64,000 nucleotides of DNA. Source: Anthoceros angustus. Lineage: Eukaryota; Plantae; Anthocerotophyta. The translations under genes were made by a program, and so were the position numbers. Positions within the stretch are counted from its first letter, which is position 1. Every line of letters begins with the position of its first letter. Below the pieces are notes generated by a model, which saw only the letters and a program-made list of their open reading frames with translations, ran no database searches and had not been told where the DNA came from. The stretch spans positions 248,001 through 312,000 of the forward strand of contig MU008211.1 of NCBI GenBank assembly GCA_010909165.1. The letters are read 5' to 3'. Positions 14,170-64,000 of the stretch are shown piece by piece.

Positions 14170-14362
14170 TGTTAATGTAGCAGATGTACATATGCACTCA
14201 AGTGCTTAGAAAAGAGCATAATGAATTATGGACATACAAAGTGTCTTATATACAAAATCTGTTCAAGGGTCATGACTATTCATATAAACTAAATATTAGC
14301 AAATAACAGCTAACAGCTGGTCCGTTTATATGTAGGAACCCTAATGGGGTTCTACTCTAACA
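14170..14362 (-). repeat. 5' LTR of Copia B (193 bp)
   Basis: tgttaatg...ctctaaca inverted termini directly beside the PBS. Confidence 0.8.
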
Positions 14363-32879: not shown

Positions 32880-33990
32880 GACCGGACCCCGAGGTCCGAA
32901 CCCCGAAGATGAGACCGACCCAGCAGACCGGACTCGGGAATAAGGCAAACTCCGAGTTCGACTCGAGTCGAGACCGGACCTCAAGGTCCGGACTCAGAAG
33001 TAAGGAGTCCCTCAGGCTTCTGTTGGGGAAGCGGTCAGTGGTCCCTGGAAGGGACCCCTTTGGGGGCGAGGGGCAGCGTTGTGGCCGGTCGTCGGACCGC
33101 CGCTAACAACGGAGATTCGGGAAGAGGAAGGGTCCCGGATCATCCGATTGCGCGCAGAATCGCCGGAGATTGGACCACCAATTAAAGGCGGAACCGGGAC
33201 CTTCCCACCGACAAGGAGATAGGAGGAGGAATAGGATGGTAGGCGGCCGATTAGGGCGCATCGAGGGCCACCGCCCGTAATAGGGGTGTAATAAAGGCGC
33301 CGACCGAGTATAAGAGGTGAGGCTCTAAGTAAAGTATCTTCTCTTGGTGTTGATGCGCGTTTCTTGCGAGACCCTTGTGCGTCTTCTTGCTAACGTGAGT
33401 CCCGAGTCGAAAGGTGCACGATGCCCGGAGAGACCGATCAAGGTTCTCGTGACGGACCCGGTAATGTTCGGACCACGAGGTCGAACCCCGAAGATGAGCC
33501 GGACCCGGCGGGGCCGGACTCGGGAATAAGGACTCCGAGTTCCTCGGGGTCGAGGCCGGACCTCGAGGTCCGGACTCGAAATGAGGAGTCCCTCAGGCTT
33601 CTGTTGGGGAAGCGGTCGGTGGCCCTAGGAAGGGACCCTTTGGGGGCGAGGGGGCAGCGTTGTGGTAGCGGTCGAGGCCGCGCCGTAACCAACGAGTTCG
33701 GGAAGAGGAAGGGTCCGCCTCGCGGATCATCCGATTAGTGCGCCCAAGCTATCGGCCGGGATTGGACCACCAATCCAGGCGGAACCGGGACCTTCAGACC
33801 GTGAAGGAGATAGGAGGAGGAATAGGATGGTAGGCGGCCGATTAGGCGTCTTGGTGCCGGCTCGAGAATAGTGTAATAAAGGCGCCGACCTTGGCGTAGT
33901 ATAAGAAGAGGCTGCTCTAAGTAAATCATCTTTCTCTTGGTGTTGATGCGCGTTTCTTGCGAGACCCTTGTCGTCTTCTTGCTAACGTGA
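32880..33990 (+). repeat. Tandem duplication (2 x ~0.55 kb) containing a TATA-like/R-like segment of element E
   Basis: gtataagag...ctctaagtaaa.t.atct.tctcttggtgttgatgcgcgtttcttgcgagaccc occurs at ~33310 and ~33900. Confidence 0.85.
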
Positions 33991-36900
33991 GTCTGAGTCA
34001 CGGCGAGCACGGCGGCTCGGGAGGCGTCAAGGTCGGTGGCGGACCCTAACGTGGTGGTGTGTGCGGGGAAGGGTGGCGGGGACCCGCCTGCAGGGGACGG
34101 CCGGACCGGATCGAACGTGAGCCGGAGGAACTCGGGAGGCGTGTAGAGCCGGACGGAGAGGCCCCAGCGGAGGAGGTCCTGACTGTAGCCCCACATTTTC
34201 CCTAAGGATGAGTGTAGTGTGAGTGGAGAGAAGAACGGACTAGAGGTGCAAGTGTGACGTGAGCGATACGACAACGGGTCCTTAAACGCTTGGCCACACC
34301 GGCCCGTATGTGAACGCGAGTAGTTAGACGCGAATCGATGAATGTGTGCGTTGAGTCTGAACGGACGCAAAGTGAAGTGAGAATCGTCTGAAACGCGGCA
34401 AACGGAGCCTATCATTCCCTTGGGAACGGACTCCTTCCTACAACGACACGGGATTGTGCGCGCCCGGCTGGCCGTCAGCAAAAGTCGCGCCACACTATTC
34501 GCTACATGTATATATGTATACATTTCATTTAATCATGGATAAGGCTAAACCCTAAACCCTTTACTCTAGGTGTGTATATGGTCAACACTCTATTTCATCA
34601 CTCCCACTTGTTGCCATATTCACGCCTCTTGTTGACGTTTCGCATCTCCACCTTGATGTTGCAGTAGGTAGAGCTCGCGTCTATGAGTACGCTCCCTAGC
34701 ATCTAATTAGCAAGCCTGAGCCTCATAGCGTCTGCCAGATTTACTCTCCATGGAAACTCTGGTCTGTGTTCCCATCAGCATAAAAGGCAATATAAGAACT
34801 GTGGAGGAGAGGTTAGCCTCACTTCTCTTCTTGCTGTACTTGAGTGTGCGCTTGTGTGAAAGCTTAATTCCTTCACAGGATTCTACTTTGAAGCAACCTA
34901 ATAATATCCTCTTTTGATGAGGAGGTGCCGGTGACCAAAAGGGAGTGTCAGGGTCGCGATTATAGCCCACTAGGTTGGTTCACCTGTGTTCCTAGGACAA
35001 CTGCCCTTGTTACTCCAGCTTCAGCATCTGCAGCTGAGTAAAGGAAAACGCCCTCGCGGCCGTCCATATGGCACCACTAAGCTGGTATTGGAGAAACGTC
35101 GAGAAGCCGCTAAAGAGGCTGAGATGAGCGTTTCTTCCAAACGGACGTATGTGAAGTAGAGCTGCCCTAAGCCCTCTGATTATGTAAGGAGGAAGACGGA
35201 GGTGCCAAAGTTTGAGTACGTCAACTTTGAGAGGCACACTGCTGTATCCTTATGGTTTCAAATGGGAAAATACTACAGGAGACCAAGATAGTCATATGCC
35301 AAGTCAGGGTGCAAATTTGTCAAGCTGCAGTTCCTTGGTCATGTTGACAACGCTTACAGTAAGCTGTCCTCCTTTGATTTTCTTGAAGTCTTTACTTCGT
35401 TCCTGCTGTCCAAGCTTATGCTACGTGCTAATACTAGCTCCCACTGCCTCTAATATCAGGGTCTGAGGATTCTGAAGAGGCTGAAGAAGAGGACGTCTAG
35501 TGGGTCTCCACCTGATCATGACTCCTATGTCCATCAGGAAGATTCTGCGGAGTCTAACAATTTCTGGGATGATTAGCCAGCAGAAAAGACTTGAAGGTCT
35601 ACCAAAAACTGCACTTGCTTGTTTGTCCCTTGCAGCTCTTTCCAAAAAGAGCCTTGTTAGCTAGTATTTGCTGAGTTCCATATTCTTCATGTGAGAGTAG
35701 AACCTTGTTTGTTGAAAGCAAATAAGTCTAACACTTGTTTATCAATGTGACTTGTGGTGCTGGGCAAGATCAGAATCCCTTATTGCAATTTGCACCTGTG
35801 TCTCCAGAATGGCAGCTGTGAGTATCCAACACTCAGCTTTCGTAACAAAGCTATAATTAGTTGCTTTGCTTGACCAATAAAGATGGTCCACCAACAATTG
35901 AGACTATCTAGTCAAGAACAGATGTTCTGCTATCTGTATCACCTGTATGATAATCTAGAGTCTACAAAACTCCGAACAAGTGCTATCCCCATGTTTCATT
36001 CCTGTGTGTTGTGTTCTTGCGTGATGTACAAGCACACGCTTAACGCTTGTTTTGTATCCTGTGTACAGTGTCAGGATTGTCCAAGAATAATCTTGATAAA
36101 GTGCTTATATGATAAAGAAGGTCGCCACTGATACGTGTGGTTGTGTATACATAAAACACAAATCAGCTCTCTAGCTGCCTATCTTGCAAGGAGGTATGTT
36201 AGCTATTTTGATCCTTCCATCTCCCTTTCAAACTAGGAGAAATACATGTTCGCAAAGTCTGATTCACTAGGCAAAGGTGTAATAGCTGGTTTTTTATCAG
36301 CAAGCCACTAATTAGCACCATCAAGAGTGTATCTTGGCTGCAGTGGAGTTAGAAACTCCTAGTTCTGGTCCTTTGGATACAAAATCCAAGACAACAATTT
36401 GAAGAGACCCTTTCTAGGTCAGTTCAGATTTTTGAGCTAACAGATCGGTATAACTGTTCTTGCCATGACTGTTCTTGCCCTTTAGTACTTGAAGGCCACC
36501 CCGAAAAGACCGACTTGATTGCTTGCTCCCATGCACTGGTCGTGGTCAAGTCTGCTTGACACCTTTTTCAAGAATCTGAAGCTCGGTCGGATCAAGGTTA
36601 GTTGTCGGTCATCACCTACGAGAAATTATATCCAAGCGTATATAAAAGGTAACTGGAGTATGGCGCCTCGTGTGATCCGGTGGCCGCCTCGAGTTCAATT
36701 TCTTAATCATGATTCTCAGCTGGATCATGATCATCAACATCATGAGAAATCATTTGTGATCCAAATGATCTTCAAGTCAGGTTGGTGTCTTCAAGTCAAA
36801 TTCTGCTGGAGGTTTATGTTCCTGCACTTCAGTCATGTGCTCCTTCCCCACCTGTAGGATTAAAATCCTCTGCAGCATTGAGATATAGGGCTCCATGAGC

Positions 36901-42869: not shown

Positions 42870-43571
42870 TTATTGATTGATTGAAGATTATTTGTCTTGT
42901 TTGAATTTTACCTTTGCATTCGTCTAGACCATTTTACCGCAATCTATGCATATGCGGAAGCGTGGAGAATTGAACAAAAGCATCGAAAACTGAAGAAGGA
43001 ACAATGTACAAGTAGAACAAAGTAAGTAGTTATAAAAACTGAATCTAAGATGTCTATTCAAATCACAGTGATCTAAATAATATATAAGTATTATTCAAAC
43101 GTGCCCTAATCAGGGCTCTAATAGCCATAACCTCAACAGTAGTGAGCACGATCACACCACCCTGAAGAAGAGTGGAGACGGTTTTGTTTTTTATCGCGTG
43201 CCTCCTGGCTTAGGCTAAATGGGTACTGTTACGCATCCTGCGCTTACATCGGTACTTAGATGGGGGTCCAAGTTTGGTCCATGGTACCATGTCCCACCAC
43301 GAAAATTCCGTCCAAGTGGAATTTTTCTTTCCTAGAATTCTTCATTCCCAAAGTTGGTCTGGAAAAAGCGAGATTCATTCGATTCCGATCATGTCTCTTA
43401 TGATGAGAGGTGGATCGGTAAATCAGTATTAGCCATTCATATCCATAGTCTCAGATTGGGAGCGGATGGAGTTAATCAAGCACAATCACCTGCAAGGAAA
43501 AAAGCAATATCCTCGGGGCTCGAGTGTGTAGCTACGTACAAAGTCGAGCACTCGCTGGTCCTTCACTGTTC

Positions 43572-45881
43572 TCACGGTCGACCCTTGCAACTGCAACACC
43601 CATTTGCGAATCGATGCACACGGTACCCATCCCTTACAACAATGTCTCTCTGTTCAAGCCTCGACATGATCTCCGTGGAACTGTGGCAGTCACTGCACAT
43701 GCGTAGATTCTTCGTTACCACCAGAGGTGTCCCACTCGGAGTGTTCAACAGACCAAACGCCAGAGCTAGCTTCTCAGCATGCCCACAAAGCACATCTTCC
43801 TTTTCCTTCTCAGACAGTGGCTTCAGCACCAACTTTGTGTGAGGTACGTGGCCTCCTTCCTGCTTCACACGTGCATTCGTGCTCTCTACCTTAAGCGCAA
43901 TATCCTCTCTCCTTTCTCCCACCAGAAATCTGTGTACCTGCTTATTCACCTCAATGGTCGCCACAGCAGGTTTCTTGTTAGCTCCTGCTGCCCTTCTACG
44001 TGTTTCAATCCTGTCTACATCGGTCCACCTTCCTGCATCTGCGTAGGCACTGGCCATGAGCACATATGCGGGAGCATCCTGCGGGTCCAGCCTAACAATG
44101 CTTTCAAAACACCACATCGCTCTCTCCAAATCCCCGTGAGTTTTGCAAGCATTCAACAAACACCTCAAGCCCACAACATTATTTTGGCCCTCACATGAAA
44201 GTAGCATCTTCTCTGCCTCATCTAGATGGCCAGCACGCCCAAGAAGATCAATCATGCAGGTGTAATGCTCAATAGTAGGTTTGATGCCATGCTCTTCAGC
44301 CATGGAATCAAAGTGCCTGCGACCCTCCTGTACAAGTCCCTCATGACTGCATGCTACTAAAAGGCAAGTAGAAGTAGCATGGTTTGGCTGAATACCGGCA
44401 ACTAACATCTCCTCAAAACAAGCTAGCGCCTTGTGGCCATCATCACAAGAACCATACCCAGATATCAGGGCATTCCATGTCACCACATCCTTTGTTCATG
44501 CTGTCAAAACCTGGCGTGCATCTTCCAGTTCACCACATTTTGCATACATGTCCACTAGGCAGGTGCCCACTACATTATCCAGCAGTCCTCTTTCCACAAT
44601 CTGAGTGCAGCTGCCTGCCCTTCTGTAAGGCACCAGTGCTTGCACAGGCCTTCAGAAGGCAAGCAAAAGTAACATGGTCAGCCAAAATGAGGCCTCTGCT
44701 CCATTTGTCCATACAGACAAGCGCCTCTTGGCGAGTCCTTGCTGTGCATACCCAGCAATCAGGGCATTCCATGTCACCACATCCTTTGTTCATGCTGTCA
44801 AAACCTGGCGTGCATCTTCCAGTTCACCACATTTTGCATACATGTCCACCAGGCAGTTGCCCACCACGTTATCCAGCAGTCCTCTTTCAACAATCTGTGA
44901 GTGCAGCTGCCTGCCCTTCTGTAAGGCACCAGTGCTTGCACAGGCCTTCAGAAGGCAAGCAAAAGTAACATGGTTAGCCAAAATGAGGCCCTCCTGCTCC
45001 ATTTGTCCATACAACAAGCGCCTCATGTCCAGCCCTTGCTGCATACCCAGCAATCAGGGCATTCCATGTCACCACATTCTTTGTGTTCATGCTGTCAAAA
45101 CCTGGCGTGCATCTTTCAGTTCACCACATTTTGCATACCCAGATATCAGGGCATTCCATGTCACCACATCCTTTGTGGCCATGCTGTCAAAACCTGGCGT
45201 GCATCTTTCAGTTCCACATTTTGCATACATGTCCACCAGGCAGTTGCCAACAAACAAGTTAGTTGGAATGCCACTGTGCAACACATCACAGTGCACTTTT
45301 CTGCCAGATTCCAAGTCAGCAAATGCACAAGCTTGAAGGGCAGCTACAAAGACGTGAGCATCCGCCTTCACTCCTGACCTACGCATCTCATGGTACAGTT
45401 GTATGGCCTCATTAGGTTTCCCATGCTTAGCATGTGCAGATTATGGAAGACCACATGAAGGCATCTGGTTTGCCCACCCTGGTGAACACATCCATGGCCT
45501 CCTCTAGCCTACCTCCACATGCATACATGCGCAAGATATGGTTCCCCAAGTATGCATTCGACTCGTACCCAAGTTTGACAGTGAGATCATGAACTCGTCG
45601 CCCCACAACCAAATCCTTCTTAGCTGTACACAGTTTAGCACAGTGTAAACAGAGACTGAGAATAGCAGAGTCTGTCTGCGCCAGAGATTCCAGGGCTCCA
45701 ACGGCCTCAGAAAGCTTCCCTGCTGACATAACGTGCTCACGGTTCCAGCCGTTACGACGCCCATTTCCGATCCTGCACGCCTGAGGTTCAGGCTTATCCG
45801 GAGCTCGACTTGGAAGGAGAGGCACCATGACCCATCTGCATATCCAACAAGCTGCTCATCAACCCAAGCTGGCTTAAACAT
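43572..45881 (-). CDS. PLS-class PPR protein with E and DYW:KP domain ending in GRP (copy 1); PPR array frameshifted as given
   Basis: P-L-S motifs (VVTWNALISGY, HVTFACLLKAC, GNCLVDMYAKCG); KKPAVATIEV; HAEKLALAFGLL; CSDCH; CCSCKGRP*. Last 304 codons (43572-44486) open; start codon uncertain. Confidence 0.9.
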
Positions 45882-46700
45882 GTTGTTTAACCACAGGACC
45901 TCGCCGGACCCTTACGCCGGAAGTCCGGCGAACGGGAGCTCTTTTCCTCTCGTCTGTTGTCCCACCACATTGCAGGCTCCAGAAAGAATTGTTGCCACAA
46001 GTGCTCCTGCTCCTGGCGACGACCATCCTTGGAAACCTTGTCGCGACCCACAAGTTTTATGGGAGATGGAAGTACTTGGCACCTTACACTGCTGCACCTG
46101 GAGGCTTGGTTATTTGCCAGGGATTGACTTCCTGGGGTGAGGTGAGCGGGAGCTACCCGTAGAATCCCTGGAGACACACCAATTTGTTGGGTCCACGACT
46201 TGTCCGGTTGCCATATTGTGGCCATCGTTCAGGGACAGTTGTCCCAAGATGAGGCTACGTACATAACAACTGACTATGTACGCGGGATGCCCAGGTACAT
46301 ACTGTGCATGATCACACCACCCCTGAAGTGTGATGCACACGCTTTCTTCACTGGGTACCTAGAGACGAAGAAGACTAGGTACCTACAAGGAGAAGGTTTC
46401 TGATTTATGGGTTCGAGGTTTCAGACAGAAACTGATGTGTTAAGGTAGCATGCTCCGTTTACGCTCTAAATTGTATAGGTACGCAGTTTAAGACATATTC
46501 ATTCCAGAAAGAGAGGGAGAGATTATTCGATTTTCATTGTTCCTGTTACGATAAAACGTGGATGAGTATTACCCATCCATGTGCTAATCACGGTGTGGAC
46601 AGGGATAGAGCTAAGCAAGCAAGCACATTTGTCTCCAAGAAGAAAAGCAGTAGTGTTCTCTGGCGTCCACACATGAGCACTGGCTAGTTGTTTTTTGTTC

Positions 46701-48896
46701 TTAGGGTCGTCCCTTACAACTACAACAACCAGCTGCGAATCGATGAACACGGTACCCATCCCTTACAACAATGTCTCTCTGTTCAAGCCTTGACAAGATC
46801 TCCGTGGAACTGTGGCAGTCACTGCACATGCATAGATTCTTCGTTACCACCAGAGGTGTCCCACTCGGAGTGTTCAACAGACCAAACGCCAGAGCTAGCT
46901 TCTCAGCATGCCCGCAAAGCACATCTTCCTTTTCCTTCTCGCACAGTGGCTTCAACACCAACTTTGTGTGAGGTACGTGGCCTCCTTCCTGCTTCAGACG
47001 TGCATTCGTGCTCTGTACCTTTAGCGCAATATCATCTTTTCTATCTCCCACTGCAAATGTATGTACCTGCTTCTTCACCTCAATGGTCGCCACTGCACGT
47101 TTCTTGTTAGCTCCTGCTACCCTTCTCTGTGTTTCAATCCTGTCTACATCGGTCCACCTACTTGCATCGGCGTAGGCATCGGCCATGATCACATATGCGG
47201 ACGGCCGCTGAGGGTCCAGCCCAACACTGCTTTCAAAACACCACATCGCCCTCTCTAAATCCCAGTGACTTTTGCACGCATTCAACAAAGACGTCAAGCC
47301 CACAACATTACTTTGGCTGTCGCATGATAAAAGCATGTTCTCTGCCTCATCTAGATGGCCAGCACGCCCAATCAAAGTGCTTGCGACCCTCAGACGCCAG
47401 TCCCTCATGACTGCATGCAACTAGAAGGCAAGTAAAAGTTGCATCGTTAGGTTGAATACCGGCAACTAGCATCTCCTCAAAACACGCTCGTGCCTTGTGA
47501 CCTTCATCACATACACCGTATCCAGATATCAGATCATTCCATGTCACCACATCCTTTACGGCCAAGCTGTCAAAAACCTGGCGCGCAGCCTCCAGTTCAC
47601 CACATTTTGCATACATGTCCACCAGTCAGTTGCCCAACACTACGTTATCAAGCAATCCCATTTTGACAATCTGTGCGTGCAGCTGCCTGCCCTTCTGTAT
47701 GGCACCAGTGCTCGCACAGGCGTCCAGAAGGCAAGCAAAAGTAACATGGTTAGCTACAATCAGGCCCTCCTCCTCCATATGTCCATACACAACAAGCCTC
47801 TCATGCCCGAGCCCTTGCTGCGCATACGCGGCGATCAGCGCCGTCCATGTCACCACATTCTTGTGGCCATGCTGTCAAAAACTCGGCGTGCATCTTTCAG
47901 TTCACCACATTTTGCATACATGTCCACCAGGCAGGTGCCCACCAGCGTATCATCCAGCAGTACTCTTTCAACAACCTGTGAGTGCAGCTGCCTGCCATCC
48001 TGTAGGGCACCAGTGCTTCCACACGACTTCAGAATGCAAGCAAAAGTAACATGGTCAGCCAAAACGAAGCCCTCTTTCTCCATCTGTCCATACAGAGCAA
48101 GCGCCTCCTGGCCGAGTCCTTGCTGTGCATACCCAGATATCAGGGCATTCCATGTCACCACATCCTTTGTGGTCATGCTGTCAAAAACCTGGCGTGCATC
48201 ATTCAGTTCCCCACATTTTGCATATATGTCCACAAGGCAGTTGCCAACAAACAAGTTGGTAGGAATGCCACTGCCCAACACATCACAGTGCACTTTTTTG
48301 CCAGATTCCAAGTTGGCAGCAAATGCACAAGCTTGGAGTGCAGCTATAAAGACGTGAGCATCCGCCTCCACTCCTGACCTACGCATCTCGTGGTACAGTT
48401 GTACGGCCTCATCAGGTTTCCCTTGTTTAGCATGCGCAGAGATAATGGAGGACCACATGAAAACAACTGGTTTGCCTACCCTCGTGAAACCATTCATGGC
48501 CCCCTCTAGCCTACCTCCACATGCATACATGCGCAAGATACGATTCCCCAAGTATACATTCGACTCGTGCTCAAGTTTGACAGTGAGGTCATGAAGTCGT
48601 CGACCCAAAACCAAATCCTTCTTAGCTGTACACAGTTTCAGCACTGTGTAGAAGAGAGACTAAGAAATGGCAGAGTCTGTCTGTGCCAGACATTCCAAGG
48701 CTCCAACGGCCTCGGAAAGCTTCCCCTGCTGACATAACATGTTCACGGTTCCAGCCGTTACAACGCCCATTTCCGAGCCTTCACGCCTGCCAGGTTCAGG
48801 CTTATCCGGAAAACTTGACTTGGAAGGAGAGGGAGCATGGTCCGTCTGCATATCCAAGGCAACGAGCTGCTCATCAACCCAAGCTGGCTTAAACAT
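46701..48896 (-). CDS. PLS-class PPR protein with E and DYW:KP-type domain ending in GRP (copy 2); frameshifted as given
   Basis: Same architecture; KKRAVATIEV, HAEKLALAFGLL, CSDCH, CCSCKGRP*; 264-aa open PPR stretch 47850-48644. Flanks homologous to copy 1. Confidence 0.9.
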
Positions 48897-49207
48897 GTTG
48901 TTTAACCACAGTCGCCGGACCCCTTACGACGGAAGTCGGGCGACAGGGAGCTCTTCTTGTCGCGTCTGTTGTCCCACCACATGGTGGAATCCAGAAAAAA
49001 TTGTTGCCACAAGTGCTCCTGCTCCTGGCAACGACCATCGCTAGAAAACCCGTCCCCACCCACAAATTTTCCCGACAGTGAAAGTGCTGGGTTCCTTACA
49101 CTGCTGCACCTGGAACCCATTTCCGACTCTTCACGCCTCCCAGGTTTGGAAGGAGAGGCACTATGACCCATCTGCATGTGCAACGAAAACAGCTGCTCAT
49201 CAATGGC

Positions 49208-51178: not shown

Positions 51179-52797
51179 TGTTGAAGGGGTAACCCTACAC
51201 TAGTCAACAAATGGGCGAACTAGGGTTATATATTGGGTTAGTTAGTTAATGATACTTAAAAATAATTTTGTTCATTAATTCATCATTTTATCATTTTTTG
51301 CCAGTTCTATGCAAAAGGCCTCTCTCTCGGCTCTCGCCTTCTGCTCTAACATTCACATGGTATCAGAGCTCCAGGCTTGATGTTTTTGTTTCGACCCTAA
51401 CTATGCCTCGGCGCGGCGGTTTTGTCTGTCAGGGGCGTGATTCGCGTTTCAACATATGCGAAGACATACAACACACTTCTAGGACAATACCGGCCAGATT
51501 GAGCAACGCCTCTCTAGTGGGAGGACATCACTTAATAACGTGGTCCCCAAACCGGGGAGGCCTTGGGAACTCCTGCACCAATCATTGCGATTCTCAATTT
51601 CGAGAATACAAAGCCCGAGATAAATACTTCAGGGATCAACTGAAGGACAGGAGGAGAAGGCAAGAAAAAGCTTCCGACTTTTCTGCTTAAACCGCCCCAG
51701 ACCACGACCCGCGACGATGCGCATCCTCTTCGGTCGCGACTCTACTCGCACCTCAATTCCTTCTCCGAGCACCGACATCGAAGCCAGCTTGCATCGCTTG
51801 GAATCAAGTCTGGGCCACATCCTCTCCACGCAAGAAGCAATCCAAACAAGATTGGTTGTTCAGAACATGCAAACCCAGGCTTCAATTGATTGCATCTACG
51901 ACGAGATTGCATACCAGATCAAGAAGATTGTTGAGCACCTGCAGAAGTTGGACATCTCCATGACCGGGCAGGTCCCAGCTCTCGGCGATCTGCTTCCGCG
52001 CTTGAGGCAGCGAGGTCTGACGCCCTGTGACGCATTGGGCTCGCCTTGTCTGACATACAACCCGCCTCTTGACCTGCATCACACCCACTGGATGAGGTTA
52101 GAAGAGTCGTGTCTTGTCGGGTGAAGCAACTTCAAACAGTTGGTGTAGTCTCTTGCCAACCGACACATCTCTTCACAACAAGGAAAAATAGACAAAAATT
52201 AGCAATGTTGGGGAGAGCCTTGTCGAGCCACACACGATAGACCAGTCAGTTCCACACTGCTTGGCTCACCCTGTGTGCCCGGACATGTCTTTCCCCTGCA
52301 CTAAATTTTGTCAGTTTTTCCTTCCACAGACTACAGAGCACAGCATGCCATACCTGATGCCCTTCTCTAGGTCATAAACTTTTCAGAGGGGATTTCTACG
52401 TATGTCAGATAGCTCTTGGTCTTCAGAGGCAAGTGGTGATACCCATCTTCTTAGTGATTCTAGTGCAGATCACAACGATCTCGAAGATCCCATTGTTGAT
52501 CTACTTGCACAGCAGCTGCAGGCACTCACTTTAGCTTCAAAGATGGGCACTAATCCCCCACCACCACCACCTCCGCCTCCACCCCCGGGCTGGACCAAGG
52601 TTCCTGCCACACCTTCCCCCACTTTCACCTCAGAGTTGAAAGAGAAAGATCGATTTAATGGCACCAAATACCCTGTTTGGAGGGTGCGCATGAGATCTAC
52701 ACTTGAGGCTCACGGCATGTGGGGAGTGGTGGATCAATCTAACCCAGAGCCTGATCCAAACAGCACGCCTCCACCCACTGTCACCCAAGTGGAGCGT
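51179..52797 (+). mobile_element. Ty1/Copia element F (LTR, PBS, upstream ORF, gag N-terminus), cut by LTR X
   Basis: LTR TG..CA 51179-51357; PBS TGGTATCAGAGC 51358-51369; gag EKDRFNGTKYPVWRVRMRSTLEAHGMWGVVD after poly-Pro. Confidence 0.88.
51717..52124 (+). CDS. Coiled-coil ORF upstream of Copia F gag, unknown function (may begin at MPRRGG ~51403 via a frameshift)
   Basis: IEASLHRLESSLGHILSTQEAIQTRL...IKKIVEHLQKL..PALGDLLPRL. Confidence 0.5.
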   Translation: MRILFGRDSTRTSIPSPSTDIEASLHRLESSLGHILSTQEAIQTRLVVQNMQTQASIDCIYDEIAYQIKKIVEHLQKLDISMTGQVPALGDLLPRLRQRGLTPCDALGSPCLTYNPPLDLHHTHWMRLEESCLVG

Positions 52798-54317
52798 TGT
52801 GTGGTGGGAGGTTCCCGGGACCCCCGGAACCCTCAGCCCTGTAGCGGCCATACTTATCCCACTATCGGTTCGTACAGTAGGTTTCGTTCCCACGAAGGAG
52901 TGGGGGAGCCCTTCCCCGCACGGATGGAGGGTGTGCCCTCCAGACCTCTCGACTCTCGGCCTCCGTCTGGCGCCCGATTATTCTGCTGCCCCTCCTACTA
53001 GCGCCACCTGACCCACTAGGTAAGTCACACTACCACCTATGCGCGATGACTTGAGTGTAGACCTCATGTGAGCACCGCCCAAGCTGCAGTGGCGACCACG
53101 GGACCCCGGACCACCGCGATGAACAATCCTCCACCAGTATGATCCTACACTTCCTAAGACCCTCCTCTTTCTCTTTTCTCTTTTCTCTTTTCTCTTTTCT
53201 CTTTTCTCTTTCTCTTTTCTCTTTTCTCTTTCTCTTTTCTCTTTCTCTTTCTCTTTTCTCTTTCTCTTTTCTCTTTCTCTTTCTCTTTCTCTTTTCTCTT
53301 TCTCTTTCTCTTTCTCTTCTCTTCTCCTTTCTTCTCTAATCTACCTCTTCCACTCTTCCTAGCTACCTACTCACAGGCGCCTCCACCGTCACCCAAGTGG
53401 GCGTTGTGTGGTGGGAGGTTCCGGGACCCCGGAACCCTCGGCCACTTAGCGCCACTTATCCCACTATCGGTTAAAGCGGTGGGTTTCGTTCCCACGAAGA
53501 GTGGGGAGCCCTTCCCGCCGGATGGAGGTGTGCCCTCCAGACCTCTCGACTCTCACCCGGCCTCCGTCTGGCGCCCGATTGACTAACCGCCTCCTACTAG
53601 CGCCCTGCCCGGGGTGACCCACACTAGGTAAGTCACACTATACGCGATGACCGGCCGCGTAGACCTCATCGCGAGCCGCCCAAGCTGCAGTGGCGACCAC
53701 GGGACCCCGGACCACTGTGATGAACAATCCTCCCGTGCGCAAATCCTACACTTCCTAAGACCCTCCTCTTTCTCTTTTCTCTTTTCTCTTTTCTCTTTTC
53801 TCTTTTCTCTTTTCTCTTTTCTCTTTTCTCTTTCTCTTTTCTCTTTTCTCTTTTCTCTTTTCTCTTTCTCTTTCTCTTTCTCTTTCTCTTTTCTCTTTCT
53901 CTTTCTCTTTCTCTTCTCTTCTCCTTTCTTCTCTAATCTACCTCTTCCACTCTTCCTAGCTACCTATCGTACAGGCGCCTCCAGCTCCCCACAGTGCCTC
54001 GGATCATAGGGTAGTGCCCTCACGGTCCTAGGCCGGACATCTGGCTGAGACCTCATGGCAGGAATTTATTAGGGACCTCCTTCACCCGCCCCAGCATGCC
54101 GTCTGCTGCAGCCTGGCAGCTCCCTCACCGCTCAAACACTCCCCAACTGCTACCTCAACAAAGAAAGGCGTGGGCCCAGCCCTTGCCCTGGTTACCGCAC
54201 CTCAAGACCCTACCAGACACCATGCACCCTCACACGGTCGGCAAGCACGTTTGCGTAGCAAACAAGCACACACAGGTCAGGAGAGCAAGGCATGATATTT
54301 TATTATGGGAGTTAACA
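52798..54317 (-). repeat. LTR family X: one partial and one complete copy in tandem, each with a (CTTTT/CTTT)n microsatellite
   Basis: tgtgtggtgggagg at 52798 and 53405; end gggagttaaca at 54317; microsatellites ~53161-53340 and ~53761-53935. Confidence 0.85.
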
Positions 54318-56371: not shown

Positions 56372-57025
56372 TTGGTTGAGGAAAAGTTCAGGTGGGCAAT
56401 CGATGAGATGGTGCTCAAGTACAAGTCCGAATTCACGCCCGAAATGGCACTAAGGAAGATGAGCACGTTTCTTGCAGGAGAGGCACTGACTTGCTACCGT
56501 GACTGCAAGGATCAGATCTTGCAGGATGCGCGGGCTCTGGCCAGGGCAAGAATGGCCAAGAAGATGTTGAAAGTAGATGAAGAGGAGGAGTCGTCCAGTT
56601 CCACACAAACTGATGCCATCACGTACCTGGTGGACGAAATGTTCTCCAAATTCGCGGAAATGTTTCCGGTAGCCTCTATAGAGAAGATTCAGGAGCTGTC
56701 GAAGTTCACCATCAAGCCCAACGAACCTCTCAGATCCGCCTATTTGAGGCTGAGGCAACTGGTGAAAGACACGCGTGTGAAGACGATGCGGGAAGCCGCC
56801 CAGATCTACATAGCTGCCCTTCCGGGAAGACAAAGAAGAGTGATTGCTAATTTCCTGCACATGATGCATGGTGCCGACTATGAGCTAGAACAAGCCTATG
56901 AGATGGCCGAACGGGTCATGAAGGGCGACGCGGTGACAAGTGCTTACTGGGAGGAGCACAATCTGGTGAGAGGACAGCAGCATGCCATGAACAACCCAAG
57001 GTTTCAAGGAAGAACCACGCAGTAG
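56372..57025 (+). CDS. gag: Gypsy gag capsid region
   Basis: VEEKFRW...MSTFLAGEALTCY...F.IKPNEPLRSAYLRLRQLV...AAQIYIAALP...LEQAYEMAE. Confidence 0.75.
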   Translation: MVEEKFRWAIDEMVLKYKSEFTPEMALRKMSTFLAGEALTCYRDCKDQILQDARALARARMAKKMLKVDEEEESSSSTQTDAITYLVDEMFSKFAEMFPVASIEKIQELSKFTIKPNEPLRSAYLRLRQLVKDTRVKTMREAAQIYIAALPGRQRRVIANFLHMMHGADYELEQAYEMAERVMKGDAVTSAYWEEHNLVRGQQHAMNNPRFQGRTTQ

Positions 57026-57471: not shown

Positions 57472-58116
57472 ATGCCCAAATCCTTTAGGCGTATGAAGAT
57501 CGGGAGGAGCGGACGTCAAGAGAAATCACCCGATCTTGAACTTATGCTCGAGAAGGTGATGGATGTGCCCGTGATGAGCTTGCGTGACCTGGGAGTCAAG
57601 ACGCAACCGTTTAAACAGGCCATGAAGGCCTGGATGCAAAAGTCTGCGGGGACGGTGTGGATCGTCGGCCCTCGTGGGGATCACACCCGGAGCAGGGGCA
57701 AAGGAGGCATTGCCATGGTCAATAATCAAGGTCGGGAGGTAACGGTCAACGGCTTTGCTCCAGAATATGTGTTGGTGGATACAGGCGCGGACCCAGTGTT
57801 GCTCGGGGCACGGGTACAGAAGGCTCTCCAGCTATACGGGGATAAGCTTAAGCCATGTGAAGTGCACATTACCACATCTGCAGGAACCAAGGAACGGGTG
57901 ATGGGAATGACTCGTGAGCCAGTACGCATAGAGTTCAAGCCAGGCACAAAAGATGCCTCTATCATCGAAGTTCATTGCTTGGTGTCTAACGCAAGGAATT
58001 ACGATGTGCTACTTGTGATGCCACGCCGCGGCCCGGCAATGGGGGTGCACTCGAGCGTTTATAGGCGGTGGCGGGATGGGGACTTCACACAAGTGGCCGG
58101 GATCCGCTTGATATGA
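57472..58116 (+). CDS. Gypsy aspartic protease region
   Basis: YVLVDTGADPVLLG (~57770-57805) and YDVLL flap-side motif. Confidence 0.85.
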   Translation: MPKSFRRMKIGRSGRQEKSPDLELMLEKVMDVPVMSLRDLGVKTQPFKQAMKAWMQKSAGTVWIVGPRGDHTRSRGKGGIAMVNNQGREVTVNGFAPEYVLVDTGADPVLLGARVQKALQLYGDKLKPCEVHITTSAGTKERVMGMTREPVRIEFKPGTKDASIIEVHCLVSNARNYDVLLVMPRRGPAMGVHSSVYRRWRDGDFTQVAGIRLI

Positions 58117-58420
58117 GGCGACATCTTTGAGAGATCGATAGCATGATTGCATTCACGGCTGTCTGGTGACATTGTGCACGAGCAAGTGGTGTGGGAAGAA
58201 ACTCGGGAACTCGTGCGGGAAGAGGAGGAGGCGTCAAAGCGGTGGGTGTATGTATGTAAAAAAAACCCCTTGCGAAAGCTTTGGCCCGGAGCTCACCCGA
58301 CAAAGCCGAACTAAGTGTGGCAGCCACCGATGTGTGTCCGAAAAATGTTTGCCAGTTGGGAGCCTTAGGCAGCGCGCTTTAAGGATCAATACGGATGTGA
58401 TTCGGTGGCAACCTGACGAG

Positions 58421-59125
58421 CGAGGTATACACCTCATGGAGCTGTGTTCAGGGATCAGTAGCGGGCTTGAAGCGGTATTGAAGAGTGGAATACGGGTGAG
58501 GAAATACACGTGTGTTGAAGTGGACGAGAAGGCACGTGCAGTAGCCAAATCCAGGATTATCAGGATGCAAAGGGCGTATCCCGGACTACTAAGCATGGAG
58601 GCAGTGAAGGGATGTCAGAGCAGGTTACCCCACGACGTCAGATTGGTAGGAAACGGCGGTGAAGCGATCAGTGCCCGGTCGATATCTTTGCTACGGGATG
58701 GGAATGCGGGGCGTTTTCGGGGCGGTTGTGGAAAGGGTGACGGTGTGGAAGTGGCTGCGAAATGTCGGGATTAGGAAGAATGCAGTCAATCAATCCCACT
58801 TGTACGTCTTTGGAGAATGTGTGCGGAGCATTCGATAAACGTGAACATGTGAGGAGGCTACGGCTCGAAGTTGGATAGGAGAGGAATTCATTATTGATCT
58901 GCGAAGCGGGCTCATCGCCACCGGGTCTCGAAGTTTTGGACAAAGCGTGACCGGTGTAGAGGTTCTCGAGGCAACCGTGAGTTGACCAAACCAGAAAGCG
59001 ATATGTGGATGACATCTTAGAAGAGGCGACGCTCACACGGTGCGGAAGATGGACAAACCTCCACGATTTCCGTAAATAAGGTTGGGAAGCCGAAGGGCTG
59101 GCCCACACTCGTAAGGGCCAATCTT
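58421..59125 (+). pseudogene. DNMT3-like C5 cytosine methyltransferase domain, copy 1 (motifs I-VIII; cut before IX-X by the duplication)
   Basis: IHLMELCSGISSGLEAVLKSGIRVRKYTCVEVDE (I-II), PVDIFATGWEC (IV, 58696-58707 = GWEC), LENV (VI, ~58813), HR..FW (VIII). Confidence 0.85.
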
Positions 59126-59412
59126 ATGCCTTTGAGAGATCGAGATAGCATGATTGCATTCACGGCTGTCTGGTGACATTGTGCATGCAAGTGGTGTGGG
59201 AAGAAACTCGGGAACTCGTGCGGGAAGAGGCGGGAGGCGTCAAAGCGGTGGGTGTATGTATGTAAAAAAAACCCCTTATCGAAAGCTTTGGCCCGGAGCT
59301 CACCCGACAAAGCGAAGGTGTGGCAGCCACCGTGTGTCCGAAAAATGTTTGCCAGTTGGGAGCCTTAGGCAGCGCGCTTTAAGGATCAATACGGATGTGA
59401 TTCGGTGGCAAC

Positions 59413-60300
59413 GGCGGTATACACCTCATGGGCTGTTCAGGATCGATGGCGGGCTTGAAGCGGTATTGAAGAGTGGAATACGGGTGAGGAAATACACGTG
59501 TGTTGAAGTGGGCGAGAAGGCACGCGTGGCCAAATCCGGGATTATCGGGATGCAAAGGGCGTATCCGGACTACTAAGCATGGAGGCGGTGAAGGATGTCG
59601 AGCGAGTTACCCCACGACGTCGATTGGTAGGAAGCAGAAGCGGTCAGTGCCCGGTCGATATCTTTGCTACGGGATGGGAATGCGGGGCGTTTTCGGGGCG
59701 GTTGTGGAAAGGGTGACGGTGTGGAAGTGGCTGCAATGTCGGATCGAAGGAAATGCATCAATCAATCCCACTTGCTTTGCGTCTTTGGAGAATGTGTGCG
59801 GAGCATTCGATAAACGTGAACATGTGAGGAGGCTACGGCGGCTCGGTTGGATAGGAGAGGAATTCATTATTGATCTTTGCGCCAGGGCTCATCATGCCGG
59901 TGCGAAGTTTTGGACAAAGCGTGACCGGTGTAGAGGTTCTCGGGCAACACCGTGAGTTGACCAAACCAGAAACGATATGTGGATGACATCTTAGAAGAGG
60001 CGGACGCTCCCGGTCGGAAGATGGACAAACCTCCACGATTTCCGTAAATAAGGTTGGGAAGCCGAAGGGCTGGCCCACACTCGTAAGGGCGCAATCTTAT
60101 GCCTTTCGGAGGCGGGGGCACCGTGGTGGATCTCGCTGGAAATGAGGTAGGTGAGCCCACGGTGATGGAGCCGAAGGGCCATGGGGTTTGATCGACGGAC
60201 CATCACGCGGGCATTTCTGAAACATATCGATGCAAGTTGCTGGGTCAAGCGTTTGATCGACACACTGCAATGGGTTGAACGTGGGTCTCGCCACACAAAT
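59413..60300 (+). pseudogene. DNMT3-like domain, copy 2 (motifs I-X all present, frameshifted)
   Basis: Motif I with indels, GWEC (59672-59683), LENV (~59788), E.E.AMGFD (IX, ~60150-60190), RCKLLGQAFD (X, ~60230-60260). Confidence 0.85.
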
Positions 60301-60527
60301 AGATATGTGCAAGGCGGGAGGTGATATGCATCTGTCAGTGCTTGAAGAAGGCGAGTTTCCAATACAGCGTCACAAAGGAGGTCATACGGCGAACACTGCG
60401 GGGGATGACGACAAGAGAGAACAGTGACAGCGTAAACTCAACACATGAGTGGCGGATATGAAGAGTTAGAAGAAGCCGATCAACGGAAGATTCGGGATAT
60501 ATGCGTACAGACACCTTCGCGTTGTGG

Positions 60528-61250
60528 GAGGCGGTGAAGGATGTCGAGCGAGTTACCCCACGACGTCGATTGGTAGGGAACGCTGAAGCGATCAGTGCCC
60601 GGTCGATATCTTTGCTACGGGATGGGAATGCGGGGCGTTTTCGGGGCGGTTGTGGAAAGGGTGACGGTGTGGAAGTGGCTGCAATGTCGGATTGAAGGAA
60701 GTACGGTCAATCAATCCCACTTGATGGTCGAATGTGTGCGGAGCATTCGATAAACGTGAACATGTGAGGAGGCTACGGCTCGAAGTTGGATAGAGAGGAA
60801 TTCATTATTGATCTTTGCGCAAGCGGGCTCATCCCACCGGTGCGAAGTTTTGGACAAACGTGACGGTGTAGAGGTTCTCGGGCAACACCGTGAGTTGACC
60901 AAAGAAAGCGATATGTGGATGACATCTTAGAAGAGGCGGACGCTCTCACGGCCGGTGCGGAAGATGGACAAACCTCCACGATTTCCGTAAATAAGGTTGG
61001 GAAGCCGAAGGGCTGGCCCACACTCGTAAGGGGGCCCAATCTTATGCCTTTCGGAGAGGCGGGGGCACCGTGGTGGATCTCGGAAATGAGGTAGGTGAGC
61101 CCACGATGGAGCCGAAGGGCCATGGGGTTTGATGCGGGGGACCATCACGCGGGCATTTCAAACATATCGATGCAAGTTCTTTGGGTCAAGCGTTTGATCG
61201 ACTTGCAATGGCTGTTGAACGTGGGTCCGCCACACAAATATGTGCAAGGC
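60528..61250 (+). pseudogene. DNMT3-like domain, copy 3 (lacks motif I)
   Basis: LPHDV, GWEC (60620-60631), AGSSHR..FWTNV-like motif VIII, AMGFD, LGQAFD. Confidence 0.8.
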
Positions 61251-61547
61251 GGAGGTGATATGCATCTATCTGCTTGAAGAAGGCGAGTTTCCAATCAAAG
61301 GAGAGGTCATACGGCGAACACTGCAGGGCTGACGACAAGAGAGAGCGACGTAAACTCAACACATGAGTGGCGGATATGCGAAGAGTTAGAAGATCGGAAG
61401 ATTCGGGATATCTGCGAACGGCACACCTTCGCGTTTAGGCGAAATGAGGCGGTATGATCGTATCAAGTTCAAGATCACCACTACCACCAATGAACGATTA
61501 TTGGAGAGGCCGGTGAGTCCCATGGAGTGGGACATTGTGGATAGGAG

Positions 61548-62700
61548 ATGCAAGGAGGTGGCGGTGGACTAATCAGAAAGTCTACCTCGCAATATGCTGC
61601 GGCAACTGTGTTGCCGTTAAAAAAGGACGAGAATGGCGAATGGAACGACAGAAGGATGTGTGGAGACTATCGTGCTTTGAATGAGGTGACACCCATGGAG
61701 CGATATCCCATGCCGACGCCGGATGAAATCTTTGATGCCATTGGACAGGCCAAGTATTTCACTACATTGGATTTCCGGTCAGGATTCAATCAAATAGTCA
61801 TCGAAGAAAGAGACAAGTGCAAGACCGCGTTTTGGGGTAAGGACCAGCTGTGGGAGTGGGAAACAATGCCATTTGGTTTGAAAAACGCATCCATTTATTT
61901 TCATTGGTGGGCGATTTGTTCTGAGGGGATCGTTTGTAAGATGTTACATCGACGACATCTTAGTGTTCAGTGACAGCCTGGAAGAACATCTCCAACACCT
62001 TGAGATTTTCTTTGCAAAGATTGGCCAAATCAGGTTGAAGGCACACCCAAAGAAATGCAAGTTTGCTTACAAGGAGATAGAGTACTTGGGGCATAAGATA
62101 GTTCCGGTGGGGTGTTGCCTCGGTGGCCAAGGTGCGGGCAATTGATCTCATGCCCGGCCTAGAGACATTCGCCTTAAGGGCATTTTGGGACTTGTCAATT
62201 ACTACGCACGGTTTGTCCGAAACATGAGCATATGCAAGGTGTATGAATTGCTCAAGAAGGAGTGCCTTGGCGATGGGGACAAGCAGAAGAGGCTTGGCGA
62301 GTTGAAGAACCAAAGCTAGCGGAAGGCCAATGCTCAAAAGGCTGATTTTGATAAGCCATTTGTCTTATATACTGAGTGCGGCTGGTCTTGGGCCTTAGAC
62401 ATGTGAAGAAGGAAAGGAGCGAGTTGTCGCATATGCAAGTAGGTCCAACAATGCTGCGGAAGCAAACTACTCATCGTATGAAGGGGAATGCCTGGCTGCA
62501 GTTTGGGCGGTTTTACATTTCAGAGTGTATTTGTTTGGCCTGAGCTTTCAACTTGTCACAGATCATCAGCCCCTTCACTGGCTGATGACAAATATGAAAC
62601 TGAGTGGAAAACTTGCCCGATGGGCGCTTTTACTGTCAGAATATGACATGCAGATTGTGCACCGAGCGGGTAAAGTGCATCTCAATGCCGGTCTCGAGAA
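61548..62700 (+). pseudogene. pol: Gypsy RT + RNase H, copy 1
   Basis: RMCGDYRALN..YPMPTPDEIFD..FTTLDFRSGFNQI..KTAF; CYIDDILVFS (~61942-61970); EIEYLGHKI; LVTDHQPL..KLARWALLLSEYD. Confidence 0.92.
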
Positions 62701-62869
62701 ACCCAATGTGCGACAAAGGAGGTCATACGGCGAACACTGCGGGGGCTGGCGACAAGAGAGAACAGCGTAAACTCAACACATGAGTGGCAGATATGCGAAG
62801 AGTTAGAAGAAGCCGATCAACAGAAGATTCGGGATATCTTGCGTGGCACACCCGCGTTTAAATTTGAGT

Positions 62870-64000
62870 AGGCGGTATGATCGTATCAAGTTCAAGATCA
62901 CCACTACCACCAATGAACCGATTGAGACCGAGTCCCATGGAGTGGGACATTGTGGATAGGAGATGCAAGGAGCTGGCGGCTGGACTAATCGGAAAGTCTA
63001 CCTCGCAATATCTTGCGCAAGTTAAAAGACGAGAATGGCGAATGGAACGAGAAGGATGTGTGGAGACTATCGTGCTTTGAATGAGGTGACACCCATGGAG
63101 CGATATCCCATGCCCGGATGAAATCTTTGATGCCATTGGATGCCAAGTATTTCACTACATTGGATTTCCGGTCGATTCAATCAAATAGTCATCGAAGAAA
63201 GAGACAAGTGCAAGACCGCGTTTTGGGGTAAGGACCACTGTGGGAGTGGGAAACAATGCCATTTGGTTTGAAAACGCATCCATTTATTTTCATTGGTGGG
63301 CGATTTGGTTCTGAGGGGTTAAGATGTTACATCGACATCTTAGTGTTCGATGTGACTGGAAGAACATCTCCAACACCTTGAGATTTTGCTGCAAAGATTG
63401 GCCAAATCAGGATTGAAGGCACACCCAAAGAAATGCAAGTTTGCTTACAAGGAGATAGAGTACTTGGGGCATAAGATAGTTCCAGGTGGGGTGTTGCCTC
63501 AGCTGGCCAAGGTGCGGGCAATTGATCTCATGCCCGGCCTAGAGACATTGCTGCCTTAAGGGCATTTCTGGGACTTGTCAATTACTACCGCCGGTTTGTC
63601 CGAAACATGAGCAGCATATGCAAGGTACTGTATGAATTGCTCAAGAAGGGAGTGCCTTGGCGATGGGGACGAGAACAGGAACAGGCTTGGCAGGAGTTGA
63701 AGAACCAGCTAGCGGAAAGGCCAATACTCAAAAGGCCTGATTTTGATAAGCCATTTGTCTTATATACGGACTGGAGTGCGGCTGGTCTTGGAGCTGTGCT
63801 GGCCCAGACAGATGAAGAAGGAAAGGAGCGAGTTGTCGCATATGCAAGCAAGTCTAACAATGCTGCGGAAGCAAACTACTCATCGTATGAAGGGGAATGC
63901 CTGGCTGCAATTTGGGCGGTTTTACATTTCAGAGTGTATTTGTTTGGTGAGCTTTCAACAGCGGATCATCAGCCCCTTCACTGGCTGATGACAAATATGA
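62870..64000 (+). pseudogene. pol: Gypsy RT + RNase H, copy 2, truncated by the window edge
   Basis: Near-copy of 61450-62600. RNase H here reads DFDKPFVLYTDWSAAGLGAVLAQ..YAS..EANYSSYEGECLA. Confidence 0.9.

Follow-up and report, generated by a model that had tools for sequence, protein, structure and literature searches.

Plants silence transposons mainly by DNA methylation, and a transposon with a de novo methyltransferase of its own reverses this usual picture. The locus described here raises the question of whether land plants harbour such elements and whether this copy could still methylate DNA. It lies at the end of a 64-kb window of the Anthoceros angustus genome, the window being the whole stretch of 64,000 nucleotides that was analysed. 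Retrotransposon-borne DNA methyltransferases (DNMTs) are known from Klebsormidium and Symbiodinium, so far from algae only (de Mendoza et al. 2018, PMC5890265). The kind of element has been known since 2018 from Klebsormidium. A sequence-only reading of this DNA named no characterised land-plant family, and no description of a gypsy-borne DNMT in land plants was found in the literature searched.

A Pfam scan of ORF pieces, combined with alignments, places gag, protease, a DNMT-like stretch, reverse transcriptase (RT) and RNase H along the + strand from 56.4 to 64.0 kb (Table 1), the same domains that the sequence-only reading had seen on one strand, including the LVDTG of the protease. Collinearity with the relative L001 points the same way. 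Identity to the L001 gag ORF is 34-35% for the gag remnant (207 aa aligned), identity to the protease part of P0003/L001 is 40% for the protease ORF (239 aa), and identity to the L001 RT is 68% for the window RT (114 aa); the RNase H has 71-73% to those of L001, L003 and L004. L001 is the best match for every one of the four. An exact-sequence look-up of the protease ORF returned no record. From the Pfam matches (PF00078, PF17917) and the collinear similarity to complete relatives, the element is classed as a Ty3/gypsy LTR retrotransposon, as had been proposed.

Table 1. Parts of the element in the window, with coordinates in window positions
Feature	Position	Strand	Evidence and remarks
gag remnant, open frame of 217 aa	56372..57025	+	PF03732 Retrotrans_gag, E 0.012, under Pfam cut-off
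aspartic protease ORF, 214 aa, LVDTG	57472..58116	+	PF13650 E 1.7e-4, PF13975 E 7.8e-4, both just under Pfam cut-offs
DNMT unit 1	58125..59133	+	truncated; linker followed by motifs I to VIII and an incomplete target-recognition region
DNMT unit 2	59130..60526	+	only full-length unit, motifs I to X, then pre-RT linker 60372-60500
DNMT unit 3	60527..61435	+	motifs IV to X, then pre-RT linker 61296-61435
reverse transcriptase, two overlapping frames	61548..62145	+	PF00078 E 3e-10 and 1.2e-7, above Pfam cut-off
RNase H	62405..62770	+	PF17917 E 2.2e-9 (match 62525-62770), above Pfam cut-off
second linker-RT-RNase H block	62714..64000	+	88% identity to 61296-62597; cut by window end

The window stops at 64000 inside the second RT-RNase H copy, upstream of any integrase position; an open 153-aa piece of this second block (63538-63996) was entered into the RT-RNase H tree. 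Within the 64-kb window no flanking repeat pair was found that could represent the LTRs of this copy, and the three tRNA-iMet-type PBS matches (14158, 42672 and 51358) all belong to other elements. When the upstream parts of the relatives L001-L005 were compared with the window, only gag and protease matched, with nothing before 56378. An Rfam scan of the window gave rRNA fragments only, far from the element. PPR-E-DYW genes lie in the same window and agree with the land-plant host that the sequence-only reading had assumed.

The stretch between protease and RT carries the motifs of a cytosine methyltransferase. All three units show PVDIFATGWEC, and motif I (IHLMELCSGISSGLEAVL) is read in unit 1; LENV is shared by units 1 and 2 and AMGF by units 2 and 3, unit 2 also has RCKLLGQAFD, and a HR..FWT(K/N) motif is present as well. 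Taken together, the units give motifs I (FxGxG), IV (PC), VI (ENV), VIII (RxR), IX and X in this order along the + strand. The core motifs reported earlier were all found in the sequence, spread over the units; within one frame, no single copy has all of them. Motif IV of the window is W-E-C-G, compared with W-P-C-Q in most of the family, with Glu-Cys for Pro-Cys and Gly for Gln.

Direct searches with window sequence were negative: a Pfam scan of nine single ORF pieces gave no match to PF00145, and phmmer against the PDB with a 202-aa window ORF gave chance matches only. A 95-aa piece of unit 1 (58385-58669) matched 314 cluster representatives at E<=1e-3. Many long family members exceed the PF00145 gathering threshold, and E is <= 0.001 in 21 of 27 aligned family domains; the window is assigned to PF00145 by way of this intermediate family. 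The specificity of the match was assessed by frameshift-tolerant alignment to profile positions 100-377, which had not been used for fetching the family. Units 1, 2 and 3 scored 62, 102 and 88 bits, compared with 19-20 ± 3 bits (maximum 30) for 100 dinucleotide shuffles per unit, 20 ± 3 bits (maximum 31.5) for 84 window pieces used as natural controls, and 16-20 bits for the reverse strand. Scores so far above chance indicate that the units are homologous to the family.

The family profile finds DNMT3A as its best match in the PDB (8e-21), followed by DNMT3B/C (about 1e-17), DRM (1e-12 to 1e-10), M.HhaI (1e-9) and DNMT2 (5e-5). With the confident predicted structure of a relative's DNMT domain as query, the top 50 Foldseek matches are all DNMT3A/B/C, with a TM of 0.85 over the whole chain. 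The motif order of the family is not rearranged, unlike that of DRM; motifs I to X stand in the same order as in animal DNMT3A/3B/3C, and downstream of motif VIII the two also resemble each other, with L.E.LE.GR in DNMT3A and DILD.GR in the family. By sequence profile and predicted fold, the insert family is classed as DNMT3-like, which bears out the resemblance to DNMT3A noted before. The identity to animal DNMT3 is only 21-23%, however, and the family has a Trp before motif IV (G-W-P-C-Q), lacks PWWP and ADD, and is embedded in a retrotransposon polyprotein.

In living members of the lineage, the methyltransferase would be translated within Pol and would most likely act on cytosines of the newly made cDNA of the element or of the insertion site, by analogy with the mechanism that de Mendoza et al. 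(2018, PMC5890265) proposed for retrotransposon DNMTs. The PHD finger on the integrase would read histone tails. An unlikely alternative is that the domain is no longer a DNA cytosine methyltransferase and serves another step of replication as a DNA-, RNA- or SAM-binding module or as a pseudo-enzyme. It draws on the motif variants, namely Glu-Cys in motif IV of the window and of Closterium, Ser-Cys in L001 and E-H-L for E-N-V in Closterium, and on the Klebsormidium domain, which gave no methylation in yeast, a result that its authors call inconclusive (PMC5890265). Against this, none of the 27 aligned family domains departs from the catalytic Cys of motif IV, Glu-Asn in motif VI or Arg in motif VIII, the copies of Calypogeia, Sphagnum, L003 and P0275 keep W-P-C-Q, (L/P)-E-N-V and A-H-R-x-R, and the predicted fold matches active DNMT3A/B across the whole catalytic domain. 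Moreover, the dN/dS of the DNMT among Calypogeia copies is 0.13-0.27, which indicates purifying selection and likewise speaks against a loss of the original function.

Whereas a working methyltransferase is the preferred reading for the living lineage, the window copy is a dead relic. Its DNMT stretch is a unit of 1.0-1.4 kb present as three overlapping partial copies with a mutual identity of 88-90% (90% between units 2 and 1, 88% between unit 3 and 59581-60523). In frameshift-tolerant alignments, unit 1 covers profile positions 10-276 over 58400-59136 (192 bits; 7 frameshifts, 1 stop), unit 2 positions 18-332 over 59416-60266 (165 bits; 8 frameshifts, 2 stops) and unit 3 positions 81-335 over 60541-61216 (7 frameshifts, 3-4 stops). 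One TGA, directly after GAFSGRLWKG, is common to all three. No DNMT reading frame in the window is intact, and only unit 2 is of full length. Because all three are broken, with 7-8 frameshifts and 1-4 stops each, this copy is unable to methylate. The earlier proposal of a retroelement, in this plant lineage, able to methylate its cDNA or host DNA needs correcting for the window copy, which itself cannot do so. The replacement of Pro by Glu in motif IV was considered as proof of death and rejected; it may be a trait of the lineage, since Closterium copies also have W-E-C and L001 has W-S-C. The dN/dS between the window units is 0.6-0.8 with codon registers disturbed by the frameshifts, and is a rough sign of neutral decay.

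The order of the parts, A-B, A-B-C and B-C, suggests two partial duplications of the methyltransferase region, and the block of linker, RT and RNase H would have been duplicated once; the likely causes are unequal recombination or a switch of template while the element was being reverse-transcribed. Small indels are unusually many in the tandem copies, at 0.36-0.63 gap runs per substitution, compared with which four other repeat pairs in the window have 0-0.2 (an AT-rich pair has 0.68, but few substitutions). Some of the frameshifts, or indeed the triplication itself, may therefore stem from errors of assembly. It is nevertheless quite improbable that the copy is much less damaged than it appears, with a real DNMT frame that is open or nearly so beneath long-read consensus errors in a tandem repeat. 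Such errors would fit the indel excess, the ts/tv of only 1.4-1.7 in the internal repeats of the element and the undepleted CpG of the units (o/e 1.10; rest of the window 0.68), but they do not account for the same TGA in three units with further stops in each, nor for an arrangement that itself breaks the frame, unit 1 being truncated and unit 3 lacking a start. Only about half of the 1-nt gaps adjoin an identical base, so these gaps are not typical homopolymer errors.

That the DNMT belongs to the element is argued by its relatives. The order gag-protease-DNMT-RT-RNase H-integrase-PHD was found in Calypogeia fissa (liverwort), Sphagnum (moss), Closterium (alga) and metagenomes. Seven independent loci or proteins of other organisms (L001, L003, L004, L005, the Closterium proteins, P0275 and P0431) show protease, DNMT and RT in this order, with similar spacing across independent assemblies and once as a single 2358-aa ORF; in L001, L003, L004 and L005 an integrase follows downstream of RNase H. 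This recurrence indicates that the lineage genuinely carries its DNMT where it was proposed to lie, between protease and RT. In separate DNMT and RT-RNase H trees, an approach already suggested from the sequence, the window falls on the same side as the protease-DNMT-RT elements (SH-aLRT 98 and 99), and the RT-RNase H tree sets it among relatives of gypsy type. A chance juxtaposition or misassembly, in which a fragment of a host DNMT3 gene or pseudogene, or of another element, came to lie between ordinary gypsy pieces, is scarcely credible: the region is rearranged (DNMT triplicated, RT-RNase H duplicated) and indel-rich, and most DNMT-gypsy proteins in the databases have the order RT-RNase H-DNMT-integrase instead, but the recurrent order and spacing in Calypogeia, Sphagnum, Closterium, run SRR33208241 and metagenomes, the best match of all window modules to L001 and the concordance of the two trees weigh against it. 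A host DNMT3 pseudogene was rejected on the same grounds. The stretch is thus very probably a dead relic of a gypsy lineage whose polyprotein comprises gag, protease, DNMT3-like methyltransferase, RT, RNase H, integrase and a PHD finger.

The lineage is not an oddity of a single genome; liverwort and moss assemblies in public databases contain it without a name. At least three further land-plant data sets contain it: Calypogeia fissa, Sphagnum troendelagicum and run SRR33208241, the last of which also yields PPR-DYW genes. The LTRs of the relatives are ordinary direct repeats of about 340 bp, with 98% identity in L004 and 91% in L005, and in Calypogeia fissa (L004) the protease-DNMT frame is open over 8001-10388; the DNMT part of P0431 is a further open domain.

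KnitGypsy-Dnmt3 of Klebsormidium nitens, which is compared with the window lineage by its published description, is also a Ty3/gypsy-type element of a streptophyte host, with a non-rearranged DNMT3-like domain inside Pol and no introns. Its DNMT is likewise under purifying selection, with Ka/Ks < 0.2 (de Mendoza et al. 2018, PMC5890265), similar to the Calypogeia relatives. The host is a charophyte alga rather than a land plant, and the repeats are DIRS-like (PMC5890265), unlike the direct LTRs of the liverwort and moss relatives. No Klebsormidium sequence was among the matches listed in the family protein searches. SymbioDIRS-Dnmt3 of Symbiodinium is another retrotransposon with a DNMT3-like domain, the only such domain shown to carry out de novo CG methylation in yeast (PMC5890265). 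It differs from the window element in being a DIRS with tyrosine recombinase, in its dinoflagellate host and in its reported independent acquisition (PMC5890265).

A further group comprises green-algal and metagenomic gypsy elements with the order RT-RNase H-DNMT-integrase-PHD, for example unnamed proteins of Cymbomonas tetramitiformis and Chromochloris zofingiensis. They share with the window lineage the DNMT3-like domain (35-49% identity), RT and RNase H (40-64%) and the PHD after the integrase. Their DNMT, however, follows RNase H instead of protease, and in the DNMT tree as well as the RT-RNase H tree a well-supported split separates them from the window lineage. The named members of this sister lineage are all chlorophytes. 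The different place of the DNMT within Pol suggests that the module was either relocated or captured twice.

A consequence for annotation is that 'DNMT3' gene models in bryophytes may be transposon genes. The Calypogeia, Sphagnum and SRR33208241 sets, in which DNMT frames are open, selection is purifying and LTRs are nearly identical, offer land-plant material for testing the function of element-borne DNMT3 and its PHD partner. The wider picture is more tentative, and the balance tips slightly against it: a single lineage of the order gag-protease-DNMT3-RT-RNase H-integrase-PHD may have persisted from zygnematophyte algae (Closterium) to liverworts, mosses and Anthoceros, with one polyprotein that combines a reader of histones with a cytosine-methylation writer kept under purifying selection, and with recent activity of the element in a liverwort, where the LTRs are 98% alike. 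If this is true, there are retrotransposons in land plants that determine their own DNA methylation.

The retrotransposon occupies 56.4-64.0 kb of the window and, as the sequence-only reading had it, carries gag, protease, DNMT-like, RT and RNase H modules on one strand, the + strand. Comparison of the window with itself resolves the DNMT-like stretch, which is not a single gene, into three partial copies of one unit that overlap; the copies follow an A-B / A-B-C / B-C pattern and are 88-90% identical. The interval first singled out, 58421-61250, begins at unit 1's motif I and ends at motif X of unit 3, and every DNMT motif quoted from it occurs there, in one or another unit and frame.

Features of the window, with positions and strand
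Feature	Positions	Strand	Remarks
1.6-kb tandem repeat	43-3212		AT-rich (31% GC); 97.7% identical
LSU rRNA fragment, eukaryotic	4035-4479	+	model positions 24-664
5.8S rRNA fragment	4863-4970	-	
Copia-type element	8954-9763	+	
tRNA-iMet primer-binding motif	14158	-	exact match
GC-rich block	30000-34000		60-65% GC; strong G and A skew
Tandem repeat in GC-rich block	30311-31526		
Tandem repeat in GC-rich block	32883-33993		
tRNA-iMet primer-binding motif	42672	-	exact match
PPR-E-DYW reading frames, tandem pair	43546-49114	-	unit ~3.1 kb; 86-90% identical
PPR-E-DYW ORF	43572-44486	-	PPR repeats, E motif, complete DYW deaminase domain
tRNA-iMet primer-binding motif	51358	+	exact match
Copia-type element	52402-53001	+	
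gag remnant	56372-57025	+	just under Pfam cut-off
Aspartic protease ORF	57472-58116	+	LVDTG; just under Pfam cut-off
DNMT-like sequence	58125-61435	+	~3.3 kb
DNMT unit 1	58125-59133	+	linker and first two thirds of unit
DNMT unit 2	59130-60526	+	full length, then pre-RT linker
DNMT unit 3	60527-61435	+	lacks first fifth; then pre-RT linker as after unit 2
RT	61548-62145	+	passes Pfam cut-off
RNase H	62405-62770	+	passes Pfam cut-off
Repeated linker-RT-RNase H block	62714 to window end	+	88% identical to first copy

With the longest piece in frame, 95 aa covering motifs I to III (58385-58669), as query, an exhaustive phmmer search against 1.84 billion cluster representatives gives 314 matches at E <= 1e-3, 15 of them at E <= 1e-10. 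The long matches are retrotransposon polyproteins. In many of these long members the matched region lies above the gathering threshold of PF00145; single pieces of the window have no match in Pfam or the PDB. A family domain profile of 377 positions was aligned to the window DNA by our own dynamic programme, which permits frameshifts and stops, and scoring was limited to profile positions 100-377 (motif IV to motif X) for independence from the query. Units 1, 2 and 3 reach 62, 102 and 88 bits, as against 19-20 ± 3 bits (maximum 30) for dinucleotide shuffles of the units, 20 ± 3 bits (maximum 31.5) for 84 natural control pieces of 1.27 kb from the same window and 16-20 bits for the reverse strands. 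Because of this separation, the DNMT-like stretch is confirmed as an observation.

The alignment of 27 family domains (A1) is invariant at the motif I glycines, the motif IV Cys, the motif VI Glu-Asn, the motif VIII Arg and the motif IX Glu, and PF00145 is found at E <= 0.001 in 21 of the 27. Among all PDB sequences the family profile matches DNMT3A best (8e-21, over motif I, the core and motifs IX-X), followed by DNMT3B/C (~1e-17), plant DRM (1e-12 to 1e-10), M.HhaI (1e-9) and DNMT2 (5e-5). The AlphaFold model of one relative's domain (P0086:1265-1640) has a mean pLDDT of 91.8, and its 50 best Foldseek matches are all DNMT3A/B/C, with a TM of 0.85 over the whole catalytic domain. The motifs run in order from I to X, unlike the rearranged motifs of plant DRM. 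Profile, predicted fold and motif order support, for the family, the DNMT3-like assignment made at the outset.

Most database relatives have the order RT-RNase H-DNMT-integrase-PHD (type A); their named members are only chlorophytes (Cymbomonas, Chromochloris), the remainder being metagenomic. Some type A polyproteins (P0138, P0149, P0380, P0382, P0392, P0134) have extra domains, such as a G-patch (PF01585) between DNMT and integrase or, in P0134, a PTM/DIR17-like Tudor domain behind the PHD finger. The window's order, with DNMT between protease and RT (type B), is that of P0003/L001 and L002 from Logan run SRR33208241, P0086/L003 from a JGI metagenome, P0275, P0431, whose single 2358-aa ORF holds protease, DNMT, RT, RNase H, integrase and PHD, and proteins of Closterium sp. 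NIES-53/54. Domain probes on the fetched loci L001 and L004 (Calypogeia fissa, GCA_965154635.1) recover gag, protease, DNMT, RT, RNase H, integrase and PHD in collinear order on a single strand; L005 (Sphagnum troendelagicum, GCA_963970355.1) gives the same series except for gag, which has no match there. The placement between protease and RT is therefore not a one-off, since it recurs in L001, L004, L005, P0431 and the Closterium proteins. L001 is the best match of each module of the window element (gag 35%, protease 40%, RT 68%, RNase H 72%), and the protease-DNMT and DNMT-RT spacings are similar in the two.

In the DNMT tree (78 rows), all type A rows separate from all type B rows and the window with an SH-aLRT of 98, and the RT-RNase H tree (44 rows) has the identical split with 99. 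The window units were entered in the DNMT tree and in dN/dS as read-throughs with X at each break. The window element is type B by both modules, and the matching split indicates that the DNMT travelled with its carrier. Both trees are made up of DNMT-bearing elements and are compatible with one capture for A and B or with more than one. Adjoining the window's units in the DNMT tree (SH-aLRT 89) is an 858-aa protein on two ENA contigs of 3.2-3.5 kb (P0121/P0154), with a copia-type RT (PF07727, E 1e-57) and then a type B DNMT (PF00145, E 4e-12); a copia element may share the DNMT module here, or the contig may be chimeric or nested.

The window copy itself is a dead relic. Aligned to the family profile, units 1, 2 and 3 show 7, 8 and 7 frameshifts and 1, 2 and 3-4 stops, respectively, so the window copy cannot encode the enzyme, and the suggestion of an element able to methylate its own cDNA or host DNA does not apply to it. 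A TGA behind GAFSGRLWKG is common to the three units; this break therefore predates the duplications or was copied by them. Motif IV reads T-G-W-E-C-G in the window, whereas the family has A-G-W-P-C-Q. The Glu is shared with the Closterium copies (W-E-C-Q) and L001 has W-S-C-Q, and therefore only the Gln-to-Gly change is private to the window copy. In the Closterium proteins P0110, P0151 and P0136, which have this W-E-C-Q, E-H-L replaces E-N-V in motif VI, and the gene models break off or skip shortly afterwards, P0136 passing from motif III almost directly into RT; their DNMT modules may have degenerated or been shortened.

Small indels between the internal repeats of the element (58125-64000) are numerous and amount to 0.36-0.63 gap runs per substitution. 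Four further repeat pairs in the window have values of 0-0.2, and a fifth, AT-rich pair has 0.68, on only 22 substitutions. The DNMT units show no CpG depletion either, with an o/e of 1.10 versus 0.68 for the remainder of the window. These features could reflect a poor long-read consensus within the tandem repeat, or they could stem from an origin rich in indels, for instance by error-prone template switching.

Type B copies occur in other land plants. L004 of Calypogeia has LTRs of 339 bp that are 98% identical and an open protease-DNMT frame of 795 aa, in which the W-P-C-Q, L-E-N-V, A-H-R-P-R and G-Q-A-M-D motifs are canonical; its RT-integrase part is broken. At 13454-14429 of this locus, the 3' LTR region is followed by at least three tandem 439-bp units containing LTR sequence, 97-98% identical. 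Among three Calypogeia copies, DNMT dN/dS is 0.13-0.27 at dS 0.37-0.47, similar to the Ka/Ks < 0.2 of the Klebsormidium element (PMC5890265). The Sphagnum copy L005 has LTRs that are 91% identical and a DNMT with one stop.

The window further contains two PPR-E-DYW reading frames in tandem. PPR-E-DYW proteins are an RNA-editing factor type characteristic of land plants, and the pair thus marks the host as a land plant, probably one without seeds. The best named relatives of the pair are from ferns (47-48%) and seed plants (~40%), and the best match overall (56%) is from SRR33208241, the run that also yielded L001 and L002; SRR33208241 seems to be the nearest sampled relative of the window's host. 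Elsewhere in the window, the rRNA fragments and the AT-rich repeat that they adjoin look like a rearranged rDNA relic. An open gag ORF (PF14223, E 1e-31) belongs to one copia-type element, a DUF4219 ORF to another. The primer-binding motif TGGTATCAGAGC has 3 exact matches where 0.27 are expected by chance. Long ORFs on both strands of the GC-rich block have no Pfam match.

In the relatives, the DNMT domain is translated within the gag-pol line of intact elements, keeps its catalytic residues, is under purifying selection and is always accompanied by an integrase ending in a PHD finger. Such an enzyme would methylate cytosines in the element's cDNA or in DNA at the integration site, and the PHD finger may guide the integrase through histone marks. 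Self-methylation was proposed by de Mendoza et al. 2018 (PMC5890265), in whose yeast experiments only the Symbiodinium DIRS domain gave de novo CG methylation; no methylation was found with the Klebsormidium domain, a result that the authors call inconclusive. Streptophyte gypsy elements with DNMT3 in Pol have been known as a kind since that study, and a 2026 preprint in the same field names only 'streptophytes (Gypsy-DNMT3)' and dinoflagellates besides new chlorophyte and euglenid elements. No report of a land-plant gypsy-DNMT3 was found in the literature searched, whose coverage is incomplete; the result amounts to absence of evidence and no more. The family-level picture deserves follow-up, with its land-plant copies, its two architectures and its PHD partner.
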